From positions 1 to 64,000 of the forward strand of contig MCFH01000080.1 in the NCBI GenBank assembly GCA_002104945.1: a stretch of DNA of 64,000 nt. The letters are read 5' to 3'. Both the position numbers and the translations under genes were made by a program. Positions 13,493 through 30,600 of the stretch are shown here, piece after piece. The notes below the pieces were generated by a model, which was not told where the DNA came from, did not search any database, and was given only the letters and a program-made list of their open reading frames with translations. Position 1 is the first letter of the stretch. Every line of letters begins with the position of its first letter. The DNA comes from Piromyces finnis finn (Eukaryota > Fungi > Neocallimastigomycota).

Positions 13493-13714
13493 TTTATTTT
13501 ATTTTATTAATTATACAATTGAATTGATTTATTTAAATTTAAAATTTATATTACATATAGTATTATACTTATTTTTTTTTAATTAGATATTAATGATATA
13601 AATAAATTCTATTAATAATCTTTTAATTTTATAATATTATAGTATACTATAATATCATTATATTTTAATTTTTATATTTAAAAATTAAAATATATTTTTT
13701 TTTGTAAACTAGAT

Positions 13715-14422
13715 TTATAATACTCTTCTGAGTTTACATGGTTTTCCATAGTAACTATTCTTATTAATGTTAGTATCTTCAACAATACCTCTCTTAGAAT
13801 TGGCAGCATGAACAATTTTGTAACTTCCTTCATAAAGAGCAACATGAGTAACTTTTCCATCAGTACAGTAGAATAATAAATCACCAGCTTTAGCATTACT
13901 TAAGGAAGAAACACTTGTTCCTGAATTAGCTTGATCAGAAGAAACTCTTGGAATGGTAATTCCAAAGTTTCCGAAAACAAGCTTTGTAAAACCTGAACAA
14001 TCACATCCATTAGTAAGACTATTTCCACCCCAAACATATGGATTACCTATATATTTTCTAGCAAAGTTAACAACTTCAGTTCCAGAAGGTTTTTTTACTG
14101 AACCAGGTGGTGGTGCAGTTACACAACATTTGAAGTTAGAGCCACCTGGACATAATCCTGAATAAGTAGTTCCGGTACAATCAGAGGTGAATTTGCATGA
14201 ACCAACAGCACCATTTGGAGCAACACATTTTGTTTTGTTACAACATTTAACATTGCTTGGATCATTTGGACATTTTCCACTAACATAAGTACCACCAGCA
14301 TTAGTACAACTTGTAGTTGAAACACAAACACCATTTCCAGAAGAGCATCTTCCGTTAACAGCAGCGAGAGCAGCTGGAACAGAAAGTAAAAGAGATAATA
14401 CAAGATTAGTATTGAAATGCAT
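13715..14422 (-). CDS. Secreted NlpC/P60 endopeptidase with two N-terminal 6-Cys repeats (array copy A)
   Basis: Signal-peptide-like N-terminus, two C..C..C..CP..CC repeats, a TAPPPGS linker, then YVWGGNSLTNGCDCSGF (catalytic Cys), HVALY (His) and VHAAN (His). Intronless. Confidence 0.92.
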   Translation of the reverse strand: MHFNTNLVLSLLLSVPAALAAVNGRCSSGNGVCVSTTSCTNAGGTYVSGKCPNDPSNVKCCNKTKCVAPNGAVGSCKFTSDCTGTTYSGLCPGGSNFKCCVTAPPPGSVKKPSGTEVVNFARKYIGNPYVWGGNSLTNGCDCSGFTKLVFGNFGITIPRVSSDQANSGTSVSSLSNAKAGDLLFYCTDGKVTHVALYEGSYKIVHAANSKRGIVEDTNINKNSYYGKPCKLRRVL

Positions 14423-15123
14423 GTTTAATCCGCGCTTATTTATATTTTTTTTTGTATAAATATTGCAATAACTATTGTAATTAATATATTGTATTTTTTA
14501 ATTAATTATTTTAAATTTTTTTAAATATATTTTTAAAATGTTATATTTTCTATGAATAATTAATCAGAAAATAATCGTACTATTTATACAGTTTTTTTTT
14601 TTTTTATCTTATTAAATAATGCATAGATCAAAGCATATATAAAAATCTAATGATGTTAAAATATTATTTTAATACATATTTTCTATATTTTTTATATTTT
14701 CTATATTTAGAATAATTAATATTAATAATTTATATATTATTTTTTAATTATGATTTCAAATTTTATATTAAAAAATATTTGTTTTTAAATGAATATTCAA
14801 AACAAACATTGATTATAATTATTGTTATTATTTAATAATAATAATAAAAAGGAAAATGTTTCAATATACCTATTCCAGCATAAAATGAAATATTTTATAA
14901 ATTTTATAAATTAAATAAACTTTTAAAATTTTTAATTTATTATTTAATTTATGAAATATTTGTGTAACCTCATATTAAAAAAGATTATATTAAATGTTTA
15001 ATGGAAACATATGAAAATTGTACAACTTGAAACAATTTTAAATTACATACTAATATTCAAATTTATTTATAGAATTAAAGCATTGTTAAAAAATAAAAAG
15101 TATTAAAATATAGTTTAATATCA

Positions 15124-15134
15124 TAGAAAAGTAG

Positions 15135-15137
<3 letters not shown>
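15124..15137. repeat. Target-site duplication, left copy (TAGAAAAGTAGAAT)
   Basis: Identical to 18499-18512 and abuts the poly(T). The last T is ambiguous with the tail. Confidence 0.9.
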
Positions 15138-15176
<39 letters not shown>

Positions 15177-18100
15177 GGCATCAAATATTTTAAACTTTAT
15201 TATTAATTTAATTAAAATTATAATACATGAAATATAAAAATTAAAATAAAATAAAAATAAAAAAAATATGTTTAAATAAACACAAATGAATAAAAATTGG
15301 GTATAATGTATTCTAGTAATTTTAATTAAAGTAAGAAAGCCACTATCATACTAAAGTATAATAATTGTATTTGACTTCCAATGGGACACCGAGCCAAAGA
15401 TCAAAATTTTATCATGGGACAAAATTATGATCTCCATTGGTTGCGCTGGCCCTCCTGGCCTGTCTTACTGTTTCTTCAGCATTGACGCTCTTGGATGTTG
15501 CTTCAAACCTTTTGAACATTGACCATTGCTGGCCAATAGCAAAAGGCATGATTTTGGTTAGAAGTTCCGCGGTTACCGTCAAGAATGGTGTTCCTTCATT
15601 AGTACCAGATTGAATCTGACGCTTACAAAGTTCTTTCCATTCCCTTGAATTGTAATTGATATTGTTAAAACTTCTTCCCCCAAGAAGGAATTTAAATATT
15701 TTACTGCACACACTAGAATAATCATACACATTAATATTCACCGGATTATTAGAACTATTACTATCATTAACTAAATTACTATCTAAATTAGAATTATTAT
15801 CTTCACTATTGCTATCATTACTAATATTATTATTTCTATTACTACTATTGTTATTATTACTATTGTTACTATTACTATTGTTATTATTACTATTGTTACT
15901 ATTACTATTAATATTATTACTATCTCTACTGATATTATCAATTTCATTATTATTGATAGGACTATTGGAATTACGTTGACTGAAAAAATTTAATAGCTGG
16001 ACTATGGAATCATAATGTTTAATACGGATATCTCTAAATGTTGGACAATCTAATAACCAATGTTTAATACTTTGATCTCCACACTTGCAACATGGACAGT
16101 AGTTAGGACAAACTGGATCAACAAATTTGGCAGCTTTGGCAACTCTAGCATCCAACTTGTATCCGCTTCTTGCTTTCAATAGCCAGTAGAAGCCATAGGC
16201 AAACTCTGGGTACTCATAACATAATTTAATAAAATCTTTAGTTTCAATAAACTTATTATCATCATAATATTGCGCTTTGATTGAATTCCCTTTGAGATCT
16301 TTCCAATAAAAGTTTTTAACTGCTTTAACATCTCCATGTTTCTTTAATTTTTTATCAAGTGTCCTACTTGATTTGCACCACGTGTATTTTCTAAATTTAG
16401 GAATGTAATTGACAAGGTATGAGATAATACAATTTGAGTTTTTCCATTTGTTAAAACATCTAACCTGAGCTAATGCACATTTGGCTGACAATGGAGGAAT
16501 ATTCAAATCTTTTGAAATAGAGTATAAAGATATAAACGATACAGCTTTATGAACTCCGGCAACCCATCGTATTCCTTTGTTAACATGCTTCTGTGCAATA
16601 CTAGACCTGGCTTTGTTGGATCCAAGTAATGGTGCAAAGTATGAAACTCTGCTAATCACTTGTGAGTTAAGTACTAGCTTTTTGAAGGGAATAGGAATAT
16701 TAGGATTTCTTAAGAATTTACTGACTGAAAAAAGCCCTTTCAAAACCTTGTTATTAAGAGCTTTAATAACTGGTTTAAGGGACAGATTCTTATCAAATGG
16801 AACACCAAGATAAGTATAACAATCAGTAGTTGGAATGGGTTGTCCTGCTAAGTAAAATGTTGGATCTCTCTTGTTCTGATTTTCTATTGATTCAGGACGA
16901 ATCACCATCGTTGAACACTTCTGGATACCAAATTCCATTTCATTATACAAGGCCCATTCATTAACTCTTCTAAGCATCTTTTTTAAGCATCCTCTTGTTG
17001 GAGCACAAATAACTATATCATCTGCAAAAAGTCCACCACAGCATCGAGTGTCACCTAAACTGACTCCGAGATCTTCACACTCTTTAAATATATCATTAAT
17101 AAAGAGATTAAAGAGAATAGGAGAAAGAGGGCATCCTTGACGGACTCCTTTCTTCACATCAAAAGATTTCGAGAATTGTCCATCTAATTTGACATTAGCC
17201 TTAGATGTTAAATATAAATTTTTGATGAATTGTAAACTCTTACCTCGGATTCCTAAACAATCTAATTTATGGAGAATATTACCGATTGGGACTGAATCGT
17301 ATGCTTTCCTGAGATCTAAAAAGGCCAAATATGTCTCTTTATTATCTAATTGACGTCTACGGCATATTTCTTGGATTGAAATGAAAAGACTAATACTTTC
17401 TTCCTTTTTTCGAAAACCAAATTGTTCAGGTCTAATGAAATTATTCTTTAGACCATATTCTGAGATTCTAGTGGTGACAATTTTGGAAATCAACTTAATA
17501 CCATTATTGATAAGTGATATACCTCGATAGTTATCACAATCTGTCAAATCTCCCTTCTTAGGAATAGAAACAATACTGGATTCATTCCATGAGTTGGGGA
17601 AGTCTCCATCCCAAATACGGTTGAATAATTTAAGAATAAAATTTAAACCATAAGCATCATTATCTGAAGTGGTATTACCGGAAGAATTATTATCTGTAGC
17701 ATTATTAGAATCATTACTTGATGGAATTAATGCTTTGTAAAATTCAATTGGAATACCATCCGGACCTGATGCTTTATAATTCGGAGTAGAGAGGATAGCT
17801 GACTTGACTTCATCAATACTAATATCTTGGTTGATATCCCATTCATCAAGCATAGGGAGTGAAAAACGTTTATTCGTTGGTTCTTCATACCAATGCTCCA
17901 AATCAAGACTTACGCCACTTGGATCTGATGCAAGATTTTCGAAATGATCATGCCACACATCTAGTTGTTCTTCCGTAGCAACAACTAATTCTCCATTTTT
18001 ATTTTTAATTGGTTGAGCAATAAAGAAAGAATCTTTTCCAATTTTTGCAGTTTTCTTGATCCATTTCCAGGCCTTCTTAGGATTATGACTCTTCATATAC

Positions 18101-18498
18101 TCACATCCTGTTTTAATCCAATGAAGATATTCTTGTTTCCTAAATTCATTACATCTTTTGTGGATGTAATCAATGAGCTTACGGTAGATTTTAATTCTTT
18201 TAATAAATTCATCTATATCATAAATTCTTTCTTTTTTAAATCTCTTATACAACTTCATTTTGATTTTTTGGAGATTAAAAATTTGTTGTGAAATATGAAA
18301 TGAAGACTTTATAACATTATTTGCTGAGGTAATACTGAGCTCGTCTGCAATTGAAAAAGCAGTTGAAGTAAACTCTTTGGAAAGTTCATCTGTAGAAACA
18401 TTAGGATCGTTGAATTTTGCTGAAAGTATTTGGAATTTATTATGACTGAGAATAGATTCCTTTTCCTCAATACATTTTAATCTATTCCATTTCAGAAT
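15138..18498 (-). mobile_element. 5'-truncated non-LTR retrotransposon (LINE) with poly(A) tail and 14-bp TSD
   Basis: The T-run at 15137-15173 is the poly(A) tail on the minus strand. The direct repeat TAGAAAAGTAGAAT occurs at 15124-15137 and 18499-18512. There is an RT ORF inside and no endonuclease domain upstream. Confidence 0.92.
15412..18258 (-). CDS. LINE ORF2 remnant: reverse transcriptase plus C-terminal CCHC zinc knuckle
   Basis: Motifs KASGPDGIP, YRGISL, FLDLRKAYDSV, GVRQGCPLSPILF, FADD, YTYLG and CPCCKCGDQSIKHWLLDC are present. The frame stays open upstream of the ATG to the 5' junction (~18498). Confidence 0.93.
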   Translation of the reverse strand: MKLYKRFKKERIYDIDEFIKRIKIYRKLIDYIHKRCNEFRKQEYLHWIKTGCEYMKSHNPKKAWKWIKKTAKIGKDSFFIAQPIKNKNGELVVATEEQLDVWHDHFENLASDPSGVSLDLEHWYEEPTNKRFSLPMLDEWDINQDISIDEVKSAILSTPNYKASGPDGIPIEFYKALIPSSNDSNNATDNNSSGNTTSDNDAYGLNFILKLFNRIWDGDFPNSWNESSIVSIPKKGDLTDCDNYRGISLINNGIKLISKIVTTRISEYGLKNNFIRPEQFGFRKKEESISLFISIQEICRRRQLDNKETYLAFLDLRKAYDSVPIGNILHKLDCLGIRGKSLQFIKNLYLTSKANVKLDGQFSKSFDVKKGVRQGCPLSPILFNLFINDIFKECEDLGVSLGDTRCCGGLFADDIVICAPTRGCLKKMLRRVNEWALYNEMEFGIQKCSTMVIRPESIENQNKRDPTFYLAGQPIPTTDCYTYLGVPFDKNLSLKPVIKALNNKVLKGLFSVSKFLRNPNIPIPFKKLVLNSQVISRVSYFAPLLGSNKARSSIAQKHVNKGIRWVAGVHKAVSFISLYSISKDLNIPPLSAKCALAQVRCFNKWKNSNCIISYLVNYIPKFRKYTWCKSSRTLDKKLKKHGDVKAVKNFYWKDLKGNSIKAQYYDDNKFIETKDFIKLCYEYPEFAYGFYWLLKARSGYKLDARVAKAAKFVDPVCPNYCPCCKCGDQSIKHWLLDCPTFRDIRIKHYDSIVQLLNFFSQRNSNSPINNNEIDNISRDSNNINSNSNNSNNNNSNSNNSNNNNSSNRNNNISNDSNSEDNNSNLDSNLVNDSNSSNNPVNINVYDYSSVCSKIFKFLLGGRSFNNINYNSREWKELCKRQIQSGTNEGTPFLTVTAELLTKIMPFAIGQQWSMFKRFEATSKSVNAEETVRQARRASATNGDHNFVP

Positions 18499-18512
18499 TA
18501 GAAAAGTAGAAT
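18499..18512. repeat. Target-site duplication, right copy (TAGAAAAGTAGAAT)
   Basis: Identical to 15124-15137 and lies at the point where LINE-like coding sequence gives way to AT-rich flank. Confidence 0.9.
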
Positions 18513-19026
18513 ATTATTTCTTATAAATTATTATAAACCAAATTTAATTAAATTAAAATAATCATCATAATGGCAATATATTAGATTAGTTTAGCTATAA
18601 TTAAATTTCCAATAATATTTTACTATATATTTGAATTAAAATATGTATAGTACAATATGAATAATTCATAATATTATTAATCATAATTTAATAATTTTCC
18701 TAATAATATTTTGTATAATGTATATTCATTATTTTTAGTATATATAACTATTTAATAATTTTAACATAATTTAAAAGTATTGTTTTATTATTAATAAAAT
18801 AAAGAAAAAAAATGAATAAAAAAAAAGTATATAATTTTTATTATTATTATTTTATTTTTTTATTTTAAAAAATTTACATTTTTCAATTTTTTTAGTGTAT
18901 AATGTATATTTATATTTTTATTATTATTATTATTTATTTCTTTTAGGTCTATTTAATTTACTTTTTTTTCTATTAATTACTTATTTTTTTAATATCATCT
19001 TATAACTGTAATAAAATATATTAGAT

Positions 19027-19719
19027 TTATAAGACTCTTCTAATTTTACATGGATTTCCATAGTAACTATTCTTATTAATGTTAGTATCTTCAACAATAC
19101 CTCTCTTAGAATTGGCAGCATGAACAATTTTGTAACTTCCTTCATAAAGAGCAACATGAGTAACTTTTCCATCAGTACAGTAGAATAATAAATCACCAGC
19201 CTTAGCATTACTTAAAGAAGAAACACTTGTTCCTGAATTAGCTTGATCAGAAGAAACTCTTGGAATGGTAATTCCAAAGTTTCCGAAAACAAGCTTTGTA
19301 AAACCTGAACAATCACATCCATTAGTAAGACTATTTCCACCCCAAACATATGGATAACCGATATAATTTCTAGCAAAATTGACAATTTCGGTTCCAGTAA
19401 CTTTTACTGGTGCAGTTACACAACATTTGAAGTTAGAGCCACCTGGACATAATCCTGAATAAGTAGTTCCGGTACAATCAGAGGTGAATTTGCATGAACC
19501 AACAGCACCATTTGGAGCAACACATTTTGTTTTGTTACAACATTTAACATTGCTTGGATCATTTGGACATTTTCCACTAACATAAGTACCACCAGCATTA
19601 GTACAACTTGTAGTTGAAACACAAACACCATTTCCAGAAGAGCATCTTCCGTTAACAGCAGCGAGAGCAGCTGGAACAGAAAGTAAAAAAGATAATACAA
19701 GATTAGTATTGAAACGCAT
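19027..19719 (-). CDS. Secreted NlpC/P60 endopeptidase with two 6-Cys repeats (array copy B, short-linker variant)
   Basis: Same architecture with an intact Cys-His-His set. The linker and domain start differ (TAPVKVTGTEIVNFARNYIGYPY) and the end is GNPCKIRRVL. Confidence 0.92.
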   Translation of the reverse strand: MRFNTNLVLSFLLSVPAALAAVNGRCSSGNGVCVSTTSCTNAGGTYVSGKCPNDPSNVKCCNKTKCVAPNGAVGSCKFTSDCTGTTYSGLCPGGSNFKCCVTAPVKVTGTEIVNFARNYIGYPYVWGGNSLTNGCDCSGFTKLVFGNFGITIPRVSSDQANSGTSVSSLSNAKAGDLLFYCTDGKVTHVALYEGSYKIVHAANSKRGIVEDTNINKNSYYGNPCKIRRVL

Positions 19720-21291
19720 GTTTAATTTGTGATTATTTAATTTTTTAATAATTAGTTTTATTTAAATATATTTATTTATTTTTTAGTTTGATTTATTTTG
19801 CAAGAAAAAAGAAAAATATATTTGCTATTTATACTTTTTTTTTTTTCTCCGATTCAAAATTCTGATTTTGAAAAGGCTTTGTAACCATTATATTAATTTA
19901 GAAATTAATATATCATCTTATTTTTATTATCAAATATATTTGAATCAATAAATAATTTTATTAATATTATATTAATATTATATTAATTCAGATGAATAGT
20001 AGTTATTCAAAAAAAAAAAAAAATTATTAAAGGTATTATTTTTCTTTTTCTTTAAATTAATTAAATTATAATTAAAAATATTATTAAGCATCCAATAAAA
20101 TAAAATAAAAGGCTTGGATAGAAAAAAAAGTCAAATAGGTATAGAAGTAGTTTAGAAAGCTATTTACCGTATTAAATTTCAACTTTTGGGAATACAATAT
20201 AAAATAAATTTTTATATATAATATTAATTTTAATTATCCTTTAAACAAATAATAATTGTGTATGTATTAGTCATATATATTAATTTGATTAAAAAAATCT
20301 TAATAAAGAAAAATTAAAATAAAAATTAATATAATTTTTTTAAATGTAAATTTATATAAATTTTTATGAAAATAGAAAATTCTATAGAATCTATTATTTT
20401 AAAATTTCCAAAAAGTTGAATGAACACAAAATGTATTTTTTTATATTAAAAAAAAAAAAAAAAGAGTGTTTAAGAATATTTTGAGAAATATTAAGATTTA
20501 ATAAAAAAAATAAAGTGTAATGATAAATAAATAATATATAAAAAATATGTTATAAAAATACTAATAATGTTTACTCAAATATCAAGGTTATTAAATTTAA
20601 AATATTCATTCTATAGAAAATTCAAAAAAGACAAAATAATCAGTCAGTAATATTTTTCTTTAAATGAATTTTTCGATATTAAAATAATATCAATTTAATA
20701 TTTATTTACTATTGTTTTGAAGATTTTTAAAAAATTTAAAAAAATATTATAATGAATAAAGTTTTTTTCTTATTATATAAAGTAGTAATAATAATTAGAA
20801 AAAAAAGAAAATTTTATAAATAATTAAACAATAGATGAAGTTTCAATTATATTATTTTATTATATAATATTACTAATATTTCATTTTTTTATCTAATATC
20901 TTTTTGTAACCAACCATCTTTTAATTATTGCATGATATATTTATATATTGTAATTATTATTATTTTAATACTATTTCTGTATAATTATCCTATTATATAT
21001 GTATATTTATCTTGATAATAGTAAATATTATTTCATTTTTTATAATCATCTAAATATGGAAATGCAATGTAATTATGGTGTACTAATTATCACATATATT
21101 GTTTCTATGATACATATTGTAATGGAAGTTATTATTGAATATTTAGAATACATAATGTATTTTAATAGCATTTAAATATATCATTTATTATTTAGCATGA
21201 TAATTTTCATTATTAATAAAACAATTTGAAATATCTAAATATATTTAGAGTTTAAAGATTTTAATTATAACATATAAAAAGAAGAAAAGTT

Positions 21292-21463
21292 TAATATATA
21301 TAATATATGATCATAAAGTATTATGAATATTTTTATAATTATTTTATTTTTTTTTTATTTTTTTTTTTAATTATTCATAATATATATAATATATGATCAT
21401 AAAGTATTATGAATATTTTTATAATTATTTTATTTTTTTTTTATTTTTTTTTTTAATTATTCA
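21292..21463. repeat. Tandem duplication, 2 x 86 bp
   Basis: The unit starting taatatatataatatatgatcataaagtattatg occurs at 21292 and again at 21378. Confidence 0.8.
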
Positions 21464-21629
21464 AAGTTTTATGTATTTTACAATTTACATAGTGTATTTT
21501 ACATTTTTTTTTTAATCAGCATATTAATAATTTTCATTGACAATTTTTATATGCTATGCTATTATTATTGTTATAGTATAATATTATTAATTTTAATTTT
21601 TAAATATAAAACTTAAAAATATATATATA

Positions 21630-22950
21630 TTTTTTTGTAAACTAGATTTATAATACTCTTCTGAGTTTACATGGTTTTCCATAGTAACTATTCTTATTAA
21701 TGTTAGTATCTTCAACAATACCTCTCTTAGAATTGGCAGCATGAACAATTTTGTAACTTCCTTCATAAAGAGCAACATGAGTAACTTTTCCATCAGTACA
21801 ATAGAATAATAAATCACCGGCTTTAGCATTACTTAAGGAAGAAACACTTGTTCCTGAATTAGCTTGATCAGAAGAAACTCTTGGAATGGTAATTCCAAAG
21901 TTTCCGAAAACAAGCTTTGTAAAACCTGAACAATCACATCCATTAGTAAGACTATTTCCACCCTAAACATATGGATTACCTATATATTTTCTAGCAAAGT
22001 TAACAACTTCAGTTCCAGAAGGTTTTTTTACTGAACCAGGTGGTGGTGCAGTTACACAACATTTGAAGTTAGAGCCACCTGGACATAATCCTGAATAAGT
22101 AGTTCCGGTACAATCAGAGGTGAATTTGCATGAACCAATAGCACCATTTGGAGCAACACATCTTGTTTTGTTACAACATTTAACATTGCTTGGATCATTT
22201 GGACATTTTCCACTAACATAAGTACCACCAGCATTAGTGCAACTTGTAGTTGAAACACAAACACCATTTCCAGAAGAGCATCTTCCGTTAACAGCAGCGA
22301 GAGCAGCTGGAACAGAAAGTAAAAGAGATAATACAAGATTAGTATTGAAATGCATGTTTAATCCGCGCTTATTTATATTTTTTTTTGTATAAATATTGCA
22401 ATAACTATTGTAATTAATATATTGTATTTTTTAATTAATTATTTTAAATTTTTTTAAATATATTTTTAAAATGTTATATTTTCTATGAATAATTAATCAG
22501 AAAATAATCGTACTATTTATACAGTTTTTTTTTTTTATCTTATTAAATAATGCATAGATCAAAGCATATATAAAAATCTAATGATATTAAAATATTATTT
22601 TAATACATATTTTCTATATTTTTTATATTTTCTATATTTAGAATAATTAATATTAATAATTTATATATTATTTTTTAATTATGATTTCAAATTTTATATT
22701 AAAAAATATTTGTTTTTAAATGAATATTCAAAACAAACATTGATTATAATTATTGTTATTATTTAATAATAATAATAAAAAGGAAAATGTTTCAATATAC
22801 CTATTCCAGCATAAAATGAAATATTTTATAAATTTTATAAATTAAATAAACTTTTAAAATTCTTAATTTATTATTTAATTTATGAAATATTTGTGTAACC
22901 TCATATTAAAAAAGATTATATTAAATGTTTAATGGAAACATATGAAAATT
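21630..22950. repeat. Near-identical ~1.3-kb segmental duplication of ~13697-15019 (gene plus ~600 bp upstream)
   Basis: The upstream non-coding sequence matches copy A almost base for base up to atggaaacatatgaaaatt (ends 15019 and 22950) and then diverges abruptly. Confidence 0.88.
21648..22355 (-). pseudogene. NlpC/P60 array copy C with premature stop (or truncated 130-aa Cys-rich protein)
   Basis: Same 708-bp span as copy A. The codon W of YVWGG is TAG (C>T at + strand position 21964). The downstream catalytic sequence is otherwise intact to TAA at 21648-21650. Confidence 0.85.
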
Positions 22951-23423
22951 ATATATAAAAAAATAAGTGACAGTAATTATTAAAAATTGATAGTAAATTT
23001 AAAATAAAAATCATTAAATAATTATTAATATTGTTTGATATTATAAAATGAAAATGTGTTATATATGGAATGTTATTTTTAATGGCAAAAATGAGAAATA
23101 CTTATGAATATATTGAGTACAAAAAAATATAAAGTTATTTTTTCATTAAATTAATAATATCATATATAGTTATTATATAAAGAATTTAAAACTTTTATAT
23201 TAAAATATATATTTTTATTTTACTAATATTTTTTTTTTTATAATTTTAAAATATATTTTTTTTACATTATTAATGATTTTCATTTAATAATAATCTTTAA
23301 ATTTTATAATATTATAGTATACTATAATATTATTATTTTTTAATTTTTTAGTATTCTATAATATTATTATATTTTAATTTTTAAATATAAAAATTAAAAT
23401 ATATTTTTTTTTGTAAACTAGAT

Positions 23424-24125
23424 TTATAATACTCTTCTGAGTTTACATGGTTTTCCATAGTAACTATTCTTATTAATGTTAGTATCTTCAACAATACCTC
23501 TCTTAGAATTGGCAGCATGAACAATTTTGTAACTTCCTTCATAAAGAGCAACATGAGTAACTTTTCCATCAGTACAGTAGAATAATAAATCACCAGCTTT
23601 AGCATTACTTAAGGAAGAAACACTTGTTCCTGAATTAGCTTGATCAGAAGAAACTCTTGGAATGGTAATTCCAAAGTTTCCGAAAACAAGCTTTGTAAAA
23701 CCTGAACAATCACATCCATTAGTAAGACTATTTCCACCCCAAACATATGGATTACCTATATATTTTCTAGCAAAGTTAACAACTTCAGTTCCAGAAGGTT
23801 TTTTTACTGAACCAGGTGGTGGTGCAGTTACACAACATTTGAAGTTAGAGCCACCTGGACATAATCCTGAATAAGTAGTTCCGGTACAATCAGAGGTGAA
23901 TTTGCATGAACCAACAGCACCATTTGGAGCAACACATTTTGTTTTGTTACAACATTTAACATTGCTTGGATCATTTGGACATTTTCCACTAACATAAGTA
24001 CCACCAGCATTAGTACAACTTGTAGTTGAAACACAAACACCATTTCCAGAAGAGCATTTTCCATTAATAGCACCGAGAGCAGCTGGAGCGGCAATTAAAG
24101 CTAATAAAATTTTGTTGAAACGCAT
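23424..24125 (-). CDS. Secreted NlpC/P60 endopeptidase with two 6-Cys repeats (array copy D)
   Basis: The protein is identical to copy A from CSSGNGVC to the C-terminus but has a different signal peptide (MRFNKILLALIAAPAALGAINGKC). Confidence 0.92.
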   Translation of the reverse strand: MRFNKILLALIAAPAALGAINGKCSSGNGVCVSTTSCTNAGGTYVSGKCPNDPSNVKCCNKTKCVAPNGAVGSCKFTSDCTGTTYSGLCPGGSNFKCCVTAPPPGSVKKPSGTEVVNFARKYIGNPYVWGGNSLTNGCDCSGFTKLVFGNFGITIPRVSSDQANSGTSVSSLSNAKAGDLLFYCTDGKVTHVALYEGSYKIVHAANSKRGIVEDTNINKNSYYGKPCKLRRVL

Positions 24126-24780
24126 TTTGAAGTTTTTCTTTTACTTTTAAAAAGTAATAAATGGGTATAACTATTGTTTTTTAAATAATTATTTTTAAAT
24201 TGTTTATTATAAACAATATTTTTCTAAAATAAAGAAACAATTCATTATTTATATAAAAAATGTAAATTAAAAAATAATTAAAGTATGTAAAATGTTAAAT
24301 TTAGATGTAACAAATTAAAATTAATATTTCAAAAATAATATATTTTTTGTGTAATTTAATTTTTATAAAATTAGTAAAATATGGAAATTAATTTATTAAA
24401 TTATTTTATTTCAAAAAAAATTATTGATTAAAAAATATAATTTTGACATGAATTAAATTAATAAATTAAAAGATATTTTATTTTTAGAAAATTTAATCAA
24501 TGATCAAATATGATATTATAATATTATAAGAAAAAGTAATATTATAATTTTATTTTTTTCATTTTTTTTTTATTTTTTTATATGAATAATTTACATTTTT
24601 TAATAATTAAATATGTATATTTCCATTTTATTATTATTTATAATATTTAAATTCTTAACTCTAAATTATAATATTTTATAATGAGTTTATTTTAATTTTT
24701 GTAGTATATTATTCAATAGTATTTCTAATATTTCTTTATATTTATATCTCTATAAATGTATAGAATGTATAAGAATTATT

Positions 24781-25035
24781 TTTATTTTTTTTAAATAAAA
24801 AATAATTACTATTTATAAATTGTATATAGCATAAAAAATAAAATATAAAAAAGTAATTAATAATATTGAAGTATTATAATTATTTTTGATGTAATATTAT
24901 TTTAAATTTTATTTTTTTAAATAAAAAATAATTACTATTTATAAATTGCATATAGAATAAAAAATAAAATATAAAAAAGTAATTAATAATATTGAAGTAT
25001 TATAATTATTTTTGATGTAATTATTTTAAATTTTT
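24781..25035. repeat. Tandem duplication, 2 x ~126 bp, 3' of copy E
   Basis: aaataaaaaataattactatttataaattg...gatgtaa starts at 24793 and again at 24919, with few mismatches. Confidence 0.75.
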
Positions 25036-25152
25036 TAAATTTTTATATTATATAATTAATACAATACTATATATTGAAAGAATCGCATTAATAAAAAAAT
25101 AACTCATATCCAATGAATTGATTTTAATAAAACATGGTAGTATTTTAAATGA

Positions 25153-25482
25153 TTATATTAAAACTTTTTTTTGTTTTGGTATACAGCATCTGAAGTCAGA
25201 ACCACCTGGACAATATCCTTTAACAGTAGTTCCTTCACAGTCAGAAATGAATTTGCATGTACCAACTAAACCTCCAGAAGTGACACATTTTTTCTTGTTA
25301 CAACATTTAATATTATTTGGATCATTTGGGCATTTTCCATTAACATAACTACCACCAGCATTAATACAGTTTGTAGTTGAAACACAAACTCCATTTCCAG
25401 AAGAGCATCTTCCATTAACAGCACCGAGAGCAGCTGGAACAGAAAGTAAAAGAGATAATACAAGATTAGTATTGAAACGCAT
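25153..25482 (-). CDS. Small secreted 12-Cys protein: stand-alone double 6-Cys module (array copy E, no NlpC/P60)
   Basis: The signal peptide is nearly identical to copies A/B, all 12 Cys are kept, and the protein ends IPKQKKVLI*. No NlpC/P60 remnant is visible downstream. Confidence 0.85.
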   Translation of the reverse strand: MRFNTNLVLSLLLSVPAALGAVNGRCSSGNGVCVSTTNCINAGGSYVNGKCPNDPNNIKCCNKKKCVTSGGLVGTCKFISDCEGTTVKGYCPGGSDFRCCIPKQKKVLI

Positions 25483-27653: not shown

Positions 27654-30600
27654 TTAAAGTAATGGATCGGTATCATTCCAATCAATATTAACATTTTTCC
27701 ATTTTGTTTTAATACAAAGATTTAATGGTGGGACTAATTTTTTATGATGATCAATAATTTCACCATTATCATCATCATGATAAGTATCATTTAATAAGGT
27801 AATAGTAAGTTTAATTTCATCTTGTTGATTTGACAATTGATCATAATAGAATAAATCAAACATACTAATTTTTCTTTTAGTGGAGACAACATCTTTATCT
27901 AAACTAAATAGAACGGTATAATGACTTTCACTACAAACAATGAAAATAGGATATTTTGGATTTTTATAATATGAACCGACAATAATGGATCGGTAGTGTT
28001 CAAATAATGATAAATGTCCAATATTTGGTTGACTTTTTATACCTTTTAAAATTTTACATTCCTCATCAGGTGCACCATCATCTCCTAATCTAATATCATT
28101 ATCATGAACGTTGGATATTGCTTTACCTGTAATCAATAGATTTACCAAATCCTAATTTATATTAATAATAATTATTATAATAATAAAAATAAAAAAAAAT
28201 ATATATATATAAATATCAATATTTTTAACAATTTAAAAGATGAAAAAATTTTATAAATATTAAAAAAAAAAAAAAATATAAAAAAAAAAAGATTTAAATG
28301 ATTATTCTTTTTGTTTTAATATATTACCTGTGTACAATAACCATGCATACCAATAAGGGTATTATTAGGTTCATCCATATCATTTCGAACATTATCTATA
28401 CCTCTACTAAGGATAGTAGAATATAAAAGTATTAAGAAAGCATGAACTTGCATCTTTTAATAAATCAATAATAAATTTTTTATAATATTTTATGAATAAA
28501 AAGGTATATAATTATTAATATTTCAAATTTTGGTATACTAAATGACATTAACATTAGTATATTATATATATATATATATATTTCTATGCTATTAACAAAT
28601 AGTTTTTATTACTTGATTTAAATTTTGAGATATAAAGTTATAACAGGCATCTCTTGAATATATATTATAAAGGGTTAGATTTTCAGCCAAATTTTTAGAA
28701 ATACTATTAGGTGATGGTCTATTTACGATTTCAGAATATATGTTAAATAACGAAATAACAGAAAAGTGGTAAAAGTATATGAAAAAAGAAAACAAAAATA
28801 ATAATGATTAGTATTATGATTGATTATTTTTTTTTATCATCAATAATCATTAGATATCAATTTTTATTAATAATAATTACAATGCAATAATACAACAATG
28901 ATTCCATTCTCCCGATTTCCATATAATATCTGCTAAAGAATTTATTAATGCATCTTCTTTTTCACCATCTGTAAATGAATGTAATACTTCTTCATCTACA
29001 CTTTTTATATTAAATATATATATTTTTTATAATTTAAATGTATATAGATAAATTGATATTAATGTTACACGATTAATGAAATCAAAATATATATAAAAAA
29101 AAGAGAAATAAAATGATATAATATATTTTTATATATATAGATAAAGGAAGTGTATTTTATACTTTTCATATTTAGTATTTTTAAAAGCAAGATGTAATAT
29201 AACATAAGCTTGAACGACAGATATTAAACCACACGGTCCTCCCTATCATTTTTAGTTTCCAAGTTAAAATAATAATTTTTAATATTATAATGAATAATAA
29301 GTTATTTATTTATGATTATATGTGTTATCAAATAATATTTTAAGTATATTATTTGTTCTATTTCTTTTATTATTTTATTTCTTTTTTTTTTTATGTAATA
29401 TTATTATTATGATAATTACTTTTTCTTGTATTAAACCGTAGCTAACACTTGAATTTCTGTTAAAACTTAATCTTTTTCCTTTCCATGAATCCTGATAATT
29501 TTCTTTGGTATCACCATAGACCAAATTTAACAGATTTTTGGATGTTTCTGTTGAAATTGGTTTTCCTTGATTTTTCCAAATATTCATACTACTATTATTA
29601 TTATTTAGGGTAGAAGAAGTGTAATTTATATTAATATCATTTTCTGCTAGATCAAAGTCTTGAATTTGAATATCTTCTATTAACATATCATCTTCTTGAA
29701 CAGATATTGAATGTGAATTTTTTTTATGAGATTTTGGTTTCATAAATCCGTTTATATTGGCTGTTGAAGAAGATAATTGTGAATCATATCCTAGATCATG
29801 ATTATGATTATGACTATTATGATGATTACTACTATGACTAGTTTTTTTAATATTTTGATTTAAATCATTTTCATTGGTGGTAAGTTTTGATCTACTATAG
29901 GAGGGATTACTTTTGGAAAATGAAAAAGAATAATTAGGGGCTGCAGGGGACGCCTTGGCTACAGAAATAGTGGTGGCAGTAATTTGTTGAGAAGAATGAG
30001 AATTTGATGAAGGTGTATTTACTGCTTTCGTCTTTTTACTTTCATGTTCTGAGTGATGTTCATTGGATAAAGATGTGGAAGATGTATAGGGATAATTATT
30101 TTTATCTGAATCTTTATTTTTTGATGAATGTGAATTTTTTTCTTTTGTTGTTGTTGTTGTTGAAATTGTGTTAGATTTACTACTATTTTTTTCTTCTTTT
30201 TGATTATTTGGTAATTCCAATAAAACTGCATTAATGGCAACTTCCAATAAAGACAAATATACTGTTTCTAAATATAATTTAATCAACCCAAAATTTATAA
30301 TATAATTATTTAATAAAATAATATTAATATTAAAACTAGTATAAGGAAAAAAAAAAAAAAAACTCTACGATATATTATTTATAATTTTATTTTATTTAAA
30401 TAATTTTAACAACTACAAGTATATATAAAAATTTTATTAAAATTTACTAGAGTTTTTATTTTGTTGAGCATGTTTTAATATTCCCAAAGATTTTGCCAAT
30501 TCAGTTCTACTATTATATGTTTTTTTTGAAGTTTCTGATAATTCCTATACCAATGTATATATATTATACAATAATAATATACAATATATAATCGTCAATT

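Follow-up and report, generated by a model that had tools for sequence, protein, structure and literature searches.

What would an anaerobic gut fungus do with a row of genes for peptidases of a bacterial kind? The question is raised by the first 64,000 nucleotides of contig MCFH01000080.1 of Piromyces finnis (GenBank assembly GCA_002104945.1), called 'the window' in what follows. In this very AT-rich sequence (12-34% GC in 2-kb windows), five paralogous open reading frames (ORFs), A to E, follow one another on the minus strand. In its complete form, the gene joins a signal peptide and two tandem six-cysteine units to an NlpC/P60 peptidase domain. The answer we consider probable is that the array encodes secreted peptidoglycan DL-endopeptidases derived from Lachnospiraceae and fitted with a defensin-like cassette, that these act against bacteria or lyse them, and that the array was amplified recently and homogenised by gene conversion. 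The five copies, and the parts of copy A, are these:

13715-14422, minus strand: copy A, intact, 235 amino acids (aa)
14363-14422, minus strand: signal peptide of copy A
14120-14362, minus strand: 12-Cys (2x6-Cys) module of copy A
14084-14119, minus strand: Pro/Lys linker of copy A
13718-14083, minus strand: NlpC/P60 domain of copy A
13997-13999, 13844-13846 and 13808-13810, minus strand: catalytic codons of copy A, for Cys142, His193 and His205, respectively
19027-19719, minus strand: copy B, intact, 230 aa
21648-22355, minus strand: copy C, interrupted, its ORF stopping at 130 aa
23424-24125, minus strand: copy D, intact, 233 aa
25153-25482, minus strand: copy E, module-only, 109 aa, comprising signal peptide and 12-Cys module

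None of the ORFs needs introns, since each is contiguous with its homologs. All five begin with a hydrophobic N-terminus ending A-x-A or A-x-G, a putative signal peptide, followed by a module in which twelve cysteines, arranged as two six-Cys units that each end in CC, are invariant from copy to copy. A preliminary description of the locus had recognized this organization: five intronless, co-oriented paralogs with a signal peptide and a double six-Cys module in common, three of them with an intact Cys-His-His NlpC/P60 domain and one with no catalytic domain at all. ORFs, DNA identities, Pfam matches and invariant residues bear it out, with one correction: the description took A, B and E for enzymes, but it is D that, like A and B, is an intact enzyme, and E is the module-only member.

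The copies differ in small ways. The linker of B is five residues shorter than that of A, and its catalytic domain carries six substitutions. D has the mature protein of A from residue 26 on, behind a different signal peptide and upstream region. Copy C keeps its frame over the full length, with an in-frame TAG (21963-21965) in place of the Trp of the YVWGG found in the other copies; its 130-aa ORF covers signal peptide, module, linker and 17 further residues, and C is either a young pseudogene or the source of a truncated, module-only product. In E, homology to A stops exactly at the end of the module and the ORF ends a few residues later; the mature protein would have a mass of 9.2 kDa, a net charge of +8 and an isoelectric point of ~9. 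A tblastn search of the 64-kb window detected neither a sixth copy nor, downstream of E, any remnant of the catalytic domain.

The domain that A, B and D carry is Pfam NLPC_P60 (PF00877; MEROPS C40), matched with 78-79 bits against a cut-off of 23 (E ~1e-22). Its catalytic residues—Cys142 (in DCSGF), His193 (in HVALY) and His205 (in VHAAN)—do not vary among 15 fungal and 12 bacterial sequences, and those of A align to the residues of 7cfl and 3h41. The closest solved relative by sequence is the former, Acd24020 of Clostridioides difficile (2e-21); the other sequence matches in the PDB are 3h41 of Bacillus cereus, SagA of Enterococcus (6b8c), 8er5 of Clostridium innocuum, LytE, MepS and the NlpC proteins of Trichomonas vaginalis. 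An AlphaFold 2 (AF2) model of A, with a mean pLDDT of 85.7 and 87-96 in the catalytic part, has the papain-like alpha+beta fold of the NlpC/P60 family, and Foldseek aligns it to DL-endopeptidases (8er5, 7cfl, 6b8c) with target-normalised TM scores of 0.81-0.87 and E ~1e-9. By analogy with the nearest characterised relatives, the predicted cut falls between the gamma-D-glutamyl residue and the diamino acid of the stem peptide. Cys186 and Cys229 (13829-13867 and 13736-13738 in copy A) are present in 15 of 15 fungal sequences, and in one and none, respectively, of 12 bacterial ones. They probably form a stabilising disulfide that was gained after the domain reached the fungi.

Where did the domain come from? 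Among 5.8 billion proteins, the full architecture turned up in Piromyces sp. E2, in Anaeromyces robustus and in rumen and gut metagenomes; after these, the catalytic half is best matched by C40 peptidases of bacteria, at ~50-55% identity. In an unrooted maximum-likelihood tree of 95 catalytic domains, drawn from the top 120 matches, 16 fungal rows come together in a single clade (SH-aLRT 97) within a supported bacterial clade (95); a divergent four-module protein, P0010, falls outside the fungal clade on a long branch. A scan of one genome for each of 185,579 prokaryotic species yielded 460 relatives, and the best 80 of these come almost all from gut and rumen genomes of the Lachnospiraceae/Eubacterium type, at 45-61% identity. 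Pfam, Foldseek, tree and scan thus agree with the earlier view of these as fungal genes of a secreted type with a bacterial-type domain, and they place its origin in the Firmicutes, among Lachnospiraceae-like bacteria. Because the fungal sequences form a single supported clade among bacterial relatives, one old transfer from a Lachnospiraceae-like gut Firmicute is the likely source. Other fungi, too, have NlpC/P60 domains joined to this module, but these share only 29-30% identity with that of the array; the gut-fungus domain is therefore a separate, Firmicutes-derived acquisition. Our literature search yielded no paper in which NlpC/P60 is connected with anaerobic gut fungi, and PF00877 is not listed in the available text of two surveys of horizontal gene transfer. 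A survey of such transfers in early-diverging fungi mentions a Piromyces finnis phage-tail lysozyme as being 'without a clear function'.

The neighbourhood of the array contains two features that help to anchor it:

15412-18258, minus strand: LINE-like retroelement (long interspersed nuclear element, without long terminal repeats) with a 948-aa reverse-transcriptase ORF (PF00078, E 9e-36)
27657-29641, minus strand: multi-exon MINDY-3/4 deubiquitinase gene, upstream of E, the synteny anchor

The exons of the MINDY-3/4 gene are 70-91% identical to those of its A. robustus counterpart, the immediate upstream neighbour of the single NlpC/P60 gene in that fungus. Synteny with A. robustus holds on the MINDY side only: a G-alpha gene lies downstream in A. 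robustus and in Piromyces sp. E2, but none was found in the window. Piromyces sp. E2 has at least two tandem copies, with assembly gaps between them. From the MINDY synteny and the E2 copies we conclude, by sequence comparison, that the gene held this locus before Piromyces and Anaeromyces parted and was amplified in P. finnis. AT-rich context, LINE insertion and MINDY synteny mark the locus as genuinely fungal; bacterial contamination is rejected by its fungal flanks, composition and synteny. The reverse-transcriptase ORF of the LINE-like element is itself intact, with a long Asn/Ser-rich insert, and lies between A and B on the strand of the array.

Two database gene models at the related loci deserve correction. 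PIROE2DRAFT_34509 of Piromyces sp. E2 (KZ151087.1, L001:4491-5183), annotated as a 105-aa 'partial' protein, is really a full-length NlpC/P60 ORF of 231 codons, and BCR32DRAFT_327279 of A. robustus (MCFG01000117.1, L002:8746-9483) has part of Cys unit 1 spliced out of what is a contiguous ORF. The first of these looked for a time like a stand-alone homolog of E. It is a mis-truncated model of a complete enzyme, and the idea of a conserved stand-alone partner at this locus was dropped on that account.

How recently did the array expand, and to what effect? At the DNA level, A is 96.7% identical to C over 1480 bp (13551-15019 matching 21485-22950), 98.2% to D over 764 bp, 94.9% to B over 741 bp and 85.8% to E over 310 bp, the last in the N-terminal half only. 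Synonymous divergence (dS) among A-D is 0.02-0.09, the mature proteins of A, C and D differ from one another by at most 2-4 residues, and the ratio of nonsynonymous to synonymous divergence (dN/dS) among the copies is 0.2-0.8, computed on very few changes. The identity is unevenly spread. A and B are 100% identical over 240 bp of the module and ~94% in the catalytic part, and the identical stretch looks like a gene-conversion tract; A and E are 97% identical in the signal peptide, ~91% in unit 1 and ~74% in unit 2. Upstream, A and C alone have sequence in common (~600 bp), and the 5' flanks of B, D and E are unrelated. Because these flanks are unrelated although the coding sequences are near-identical, the coding regions look homogenised by conversion and the promoters do not. 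The pattern as a whole is, as far as sequence comparison goes, what recent duplication accompanied by gene conversion leaves behind. The preliminary description had called the set 'amplified, diversifying'; the tandem amplification is there, and the diversification is not supported. With dS so low, A, C and D so nearly identical, and conversion mosaics among the copies, the array argues for dosage or differential regulation under concerted evolution, rather than for new specificities.

The 12-Cys module is the more unusual half of these proteins. Its cysteines are spaced 6, 5, 11, 8 and then CC in unit 1, and 9, 5, 8, 7 and then CC in unit 2. A Pfam scan of the module matched no family even at E<=10, CBM14, CBM18 and LysM included, and among known chitin- or peptidoglycan-binding modules (those three, SH3b and PG_binding_1) no profile match identified it. 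Nor is the module peculiar to the array. Elsewhere in gut fungi, cassettes of signal peptide plus module, 55-72% identical to those of the array, precede GH24 lysozymes, phage-tail lysozymes (PF18013), C39-like peptidases, amidases that weakly resemble NlpC/P60, a PLA2 and an unannotated domain of ~200 aa. A module profile run against 1.84 billion representative sequences matched 897 clusters at E<=1e-3, of which 278 remain at E<=1e-10. When the best 144 of the 897 were scanned for Pfam partners, Phage_lysozyme and Phage_lysozyme2 appeared seven times each and NLPC_P60 three times, along with Peptidase_M15_3, VanY, M15_4, Peptidase_C39_2, Amidase_2, GH25, GH108, Muramidase (PF11860) and PG_binding_1; ribonuclease, PLA2G12, papain and BSP domains appeared as well. 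Module partners, then, are mostly peptidoglycan hydrolases.

Members of the module family come from Neocallimastix, Mycena, Aulographum, Xylariaceae, Podospora, Tuber, Serendipita, Trichophyton (Swiss-Prot ARB_07466, 41% identity), a dictyostelid and a nematode, and some AFDB accessions are presumably rotifer proteins. The number of repeats per protein ranges from 1 to 21. A word-index search with E alone returned nine proteins only, and the protein-language-model neighbours of the module, which score 0.73 at most, are leads only.

Several family members are worth recording in their own right. In P0019, P0030 (from Neocallimastix sp.) and P0041, the cassette is followed by the ~200-aa domain, from about residue 105 to the end, which has no sequence match in Pfam or the PDB. 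This domain contains the motif E-G-x-S-P-G...NNYWGIG, its language-model neighbours are GH73 glucosaminidases (0.93-0.95), and it is probably a divergent N-acetylglucosaminidase. P0121 (1179 aa), P0122 (1244 aa) and P0123 (761 aa) are giant secreted-type proteins with 9-21 tandem six-Cys units, from AT-rich sources that resemble gut fungi; P0121 ends in a phage-tail lysozyme, and P0122 and P0123 have no recognisable enzyme domain. P0238 and P0244 have several Cys units behind signal peptides of lipoprotein type (L-S-A-C-G and F-M-G-C-A). They may be bacterial, and the module perhaps not strictly eukaryotic.

What might the module be? The AF2 model of E has a pLDDT of 80-88 over the module, and Foldseek found nothing significant for it in the PDB. 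An independent aligner, run against 48,161 representative chains, returned six with Z>=2 (2.0-2.9), every one of them a beta-defensin-fold peptide: helianthamide, platypus DLP, the big-defensin C-domain, HBD4, crotamine and APETx1. Weak neighbours in Swiss-Prot are gallinacin-11, the tick carboxypeptidase inhibitor (TCI), helofensins and CLIP domains. Beta-defensin, or trans-defensin, peptides, tandem gallinacin-11 and TCI among them, have the same six cysteines per unit, the same terminal CC, a cationic character and the same small three-stranded sheet that is predicted for a module unit; they differ in that the module scores far below significance and has no sequence homology to them. The cysteine spacing of the units is, we take it, near the beta-defensin consensus but not exactly on it. 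The units look beta-defensin-like, and we regard the resemblance as a consistent lead rather than a demonstration. Two other identities were rejected: a CSalpha-beta defensin of the copsin type, because CxxxC and CxC are absent from both units, whose only adjacent cysteines are the terminal CC; and the fungal SH3-like domain for cell-wall binding, whose PDB entries were not matched by the module model.

An array of this kind has close parallels in other organisms, and the suggestion that it formed an undescribed system was overstated. The nearest is in the mushroom Coprinopsis cinerea, which has ten secreted 12-Cys 'DLP' proteins of ~100 aa and five GH24 lysozymes with the same N-terminal domain; its LYS and DLP proteins are induced by Escherichia coli and Bacillus subtilis, are part of the secretome and have lytic activity (Kombrink et al., ISME J 2019, PMC6461984). 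The design, published in 2018/19, is the same: a signal peptide, a 12-Cys domain of ~80-100 aa, a linker and a phage- or bacterial-type hydrolase (LYS1-5), with stand-alone proteins of ~100 aa (DLP1-10) that resemble E, in families that are likewise expanded and clustered. The module agrees with what defines the DLP family, a secreted twelve-Cys domain of up to ~100 aa that stands alone or is joined by a linker to the N-terminal side of a hydrolase. Homology to the mushroom proteins themselves has only indirect support: Foldseek matched the module to A8P7Y8 (37% identity, E 2e-6; the match does not state the entry's organism), and strong profile matches include stand-alone, GH24-fused and M15-fused proteins of Agaricales (Mycena). 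The systems differ in chemistry and in host, the mushroom enzymes being GH24 muramidases that cut the glycan whereas those of the array are predicted endopeptidases for the peptide stem, and the array's host being an early-diverging anaerobe. They differ, too, in how the domain has been described. Kombrink et al. called it CSalpha-beta-defensin-like and thought its fusion to enzymes restricted to a few fungi, whereas the units of the array look beta-defensin-like and belong to a very broad family. Two things are new here: that anaerobic gut fungi have a version with NlpC/P60, and that the module family is so broad.

The second parallel is Trichomonas vaginalis, where laterally acquired NlpC/P60 DL-endopeptidases let the parasite outcompete bacteria (Pinheiro et al. 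2018, 10.1101/320382), a precedent that the preliminary description had already invoked. The same paper cites candidate NlpC/P60 transfers for Aspergillus, Metarhizium and mites. NlpC_A and NlpC_B of T. vaginalis (see also Barnett et al. 2023, PMC10461829) and the array have in common an acquisition from bacteria, an expanded family, a signal peptide and the fold (6biq, 6bim, 8ev4). The acquisitions are independent, with 18-29% identity in Foldseek alignments, and DL-endopeptidase activity, predicted for the fungal enzymes, has been shown for those of T. vaginalis. The accessory parts differ as well: in T. vaginalis a bacterial SH3 domain that came with the gene, and in the fungus a eukaryotic Cys-rich cassette added after the transfer. 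Enzymes of the Firmicutes themselves—SagA (6b8c), Acd24020 (7cfl), LytE and CwlO—belong to the same family, with the same triad and fold, at 35-39% identity in Foldseek alignments. They are autolysins with coiled-coil, SH3b, LysM or Big_2 parts, where the fungal enzymes have the 12-Cys cassette and the Cys186/Cys229 pair. A comparable logic was described by Moroz et al. (2023, PMC10394673), who found a small, N-terminal, non-catalytic module with an SH3-like fold on several families of fungal peptidoglycan hydrolases (GH24, GH184 and C40); such a module is useful for 'module walking'. That module is different from ours: it has 73 aa, an SH3 fold and four cysteines, it binds cells, and its removal lowered activity (PMC10394673).

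These comparisons suggest the following history and function. An ancestor of the Neocallimastigomycota would have acquired an NlpC/P60 domain from a gut Firmicute close to the Lachnospiraceae. The domain would then have joined a pre-existing eukaryotic cassette, a signal peptide with two tandem six-Cys 'DLP' units, and gained the Cys186/Cys229 pair. Later, the single ancestral gene beside MINDY-3/4 would have been amplified to four full copies and kept near-identical by conversion, the outcome being more dosage under different upstream regions. The secreted enzyme would cleave the stem peptides of the bacterial wall, and this would kill or weaken neighbouring rumen bacteria, mainly Gram-positive ones, or digest wall debris for nutrients. 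The module is a portable eukaryotic accessory of many enzymes that degrade the bacterial envelope, and it most likely binds an envelope component or acts as a cationic, defensin-like peptide. E would be its free form, and C, if real, would show how free forms arise by truncation.

Are the genes expressed? When words were sampled from a 1301-bp stretch, 54% of it ORF, four sequencing runs from the same organism, labelled 'RNA?', contained 38-51% of them; these proportions fit a transcript rather than genomic DNA. For copy E, 90% of sampled 31-mers occur in one of these four probable RNA runs, and none in the other three.

An antibacterial or bacteriolytic role, which the preliminary description favoured, seems to us, by analogy, still the best reading, because the module sits on many peptidoglycan hydrolases and because the mushroom system is induced by bacteria and lytic. 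Several points weigh against it. NlpC/P60 enzymes may have other substrates, such as poly-gamma-glutamate, or may carry out acyl transfer. The nature of the four sequencing runs is a guess, and the scores behind the beta-defensin-like fold are weak (Z 2.0-2.9). In C. cinerea, furthermore, LYS2 without its 12-Cys domain lysed B. subtilis and Micrococcus luteus, and hydrolysed cell walls, as before, and the DLPs could not be produced (PMC6461984); with this deletion having no effect, a simple role as a 'cell-wall-binding enhancer' is unproven.

Might the enzymes be for feeding, and not for antagonism? The fungus could digest the peptidoglycan of dead or lysed rumen bacteria for amino acids and amino sugars, the module doing nothing but stabilise the enzyme in a proteolytic and reducing rumen fluid. 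We judge this unlikely but worth serious thought. The enzymology would be identical; lysis by LYS2 was unaltered when its module was deleted; the extra cysteine pair, found in the fungi, points to selection for stability; and Moroz et al. have suggested that the purpose of fungal muramidases may be to feed on dead bacteria and not to compete (PMC10394673). But the C. cinerea homologs are induced by live bacteria, and together with defensins, and the module is cationic. Moreover a free, module-only E has been kept and is probably transcribed, which a mere stabiliser would not explain.

It is improbable, in our opinion, that the module instead fastens the enzymes to the chitin wall of the fungus itself, to form a shield at its surface rather than diffusing enzymes aimed at bacteria. 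Many small fungal domains with six or eight cysteines do bind chitin, and the family members with 9-21 repeats are of a build typical of wall-associated proteins; yet Pfam yielded no chitin-binding match to the module, its only structural neighbours are peptides of the beta-defensin fold, and its partners are almost all enzymes that act on bacteria. Least credible of all, and in our view very improbable, is that the array is an assembly artefact of collapsed or expanded repeats, bacterial contamination or a set of decaying, functionless relics, for although C has a premature stop, E lacks the enzyme domain and the copies closely resemble one another, every copy has flanks, an upstream region and substitutions of its own, a LINE separates A from B, A. 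robustus is syntenic and Piromyces sp. E2 has tandem copies, codon usage and base composition are fungal, three ORFs are intact with all catalytic residues and dN/dS is below 1, and the probable RNA runs contain the coding parts.

Returning to secreted, bacteria-directed enzymes as the reading we prefer, one can go a step further, to a proposal that is rather doubtful but attractive: that the cassette consists of tandem, true trans-defensin units. It would then be a 'capture and arm' device, fused to acquired lytic domains of at least 12 enzyme families and serving to reach or breach the envelope, with free forms such as E acting as antimicrobial peptides alongside the enzymes. To our knowledge, trans-defensins have been described only in animals. 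If the proposal were true, their superfamily would reach from animals to fungi, amoebozoans and nematodes, and the cassette could be used for 'module walking' to new antibacterial enzymes, for example the ~200-aa domains of P0019 and P0030, and P0122.

The module family ties the 'DLP' domain of a mushroom to hundreds of eukaryotic proteins, which makes its function a clearer and wider question, and it offers a handle for finding new cell-wall-degrading enzymes. Such disulfide-rich lysins, if they turn out to be stable in the rumen, could interest those who work on feed additives and enzybiotics. Anaerobic gut fungi are a small minority among the bacteria of the rumen, and how they persist there is poorly understood; the emphasis of research up to now has been on secondary metabolites and plant-fibre enzymes. 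Taken with its relatives that bear the cassette on GH24, GH25, GH73-like and phage-tail-lysozyme domains, the array points to a protein-based antibacterial or bacteriolytic toolkit, built from the genes of the bacteria among which these fungi live.

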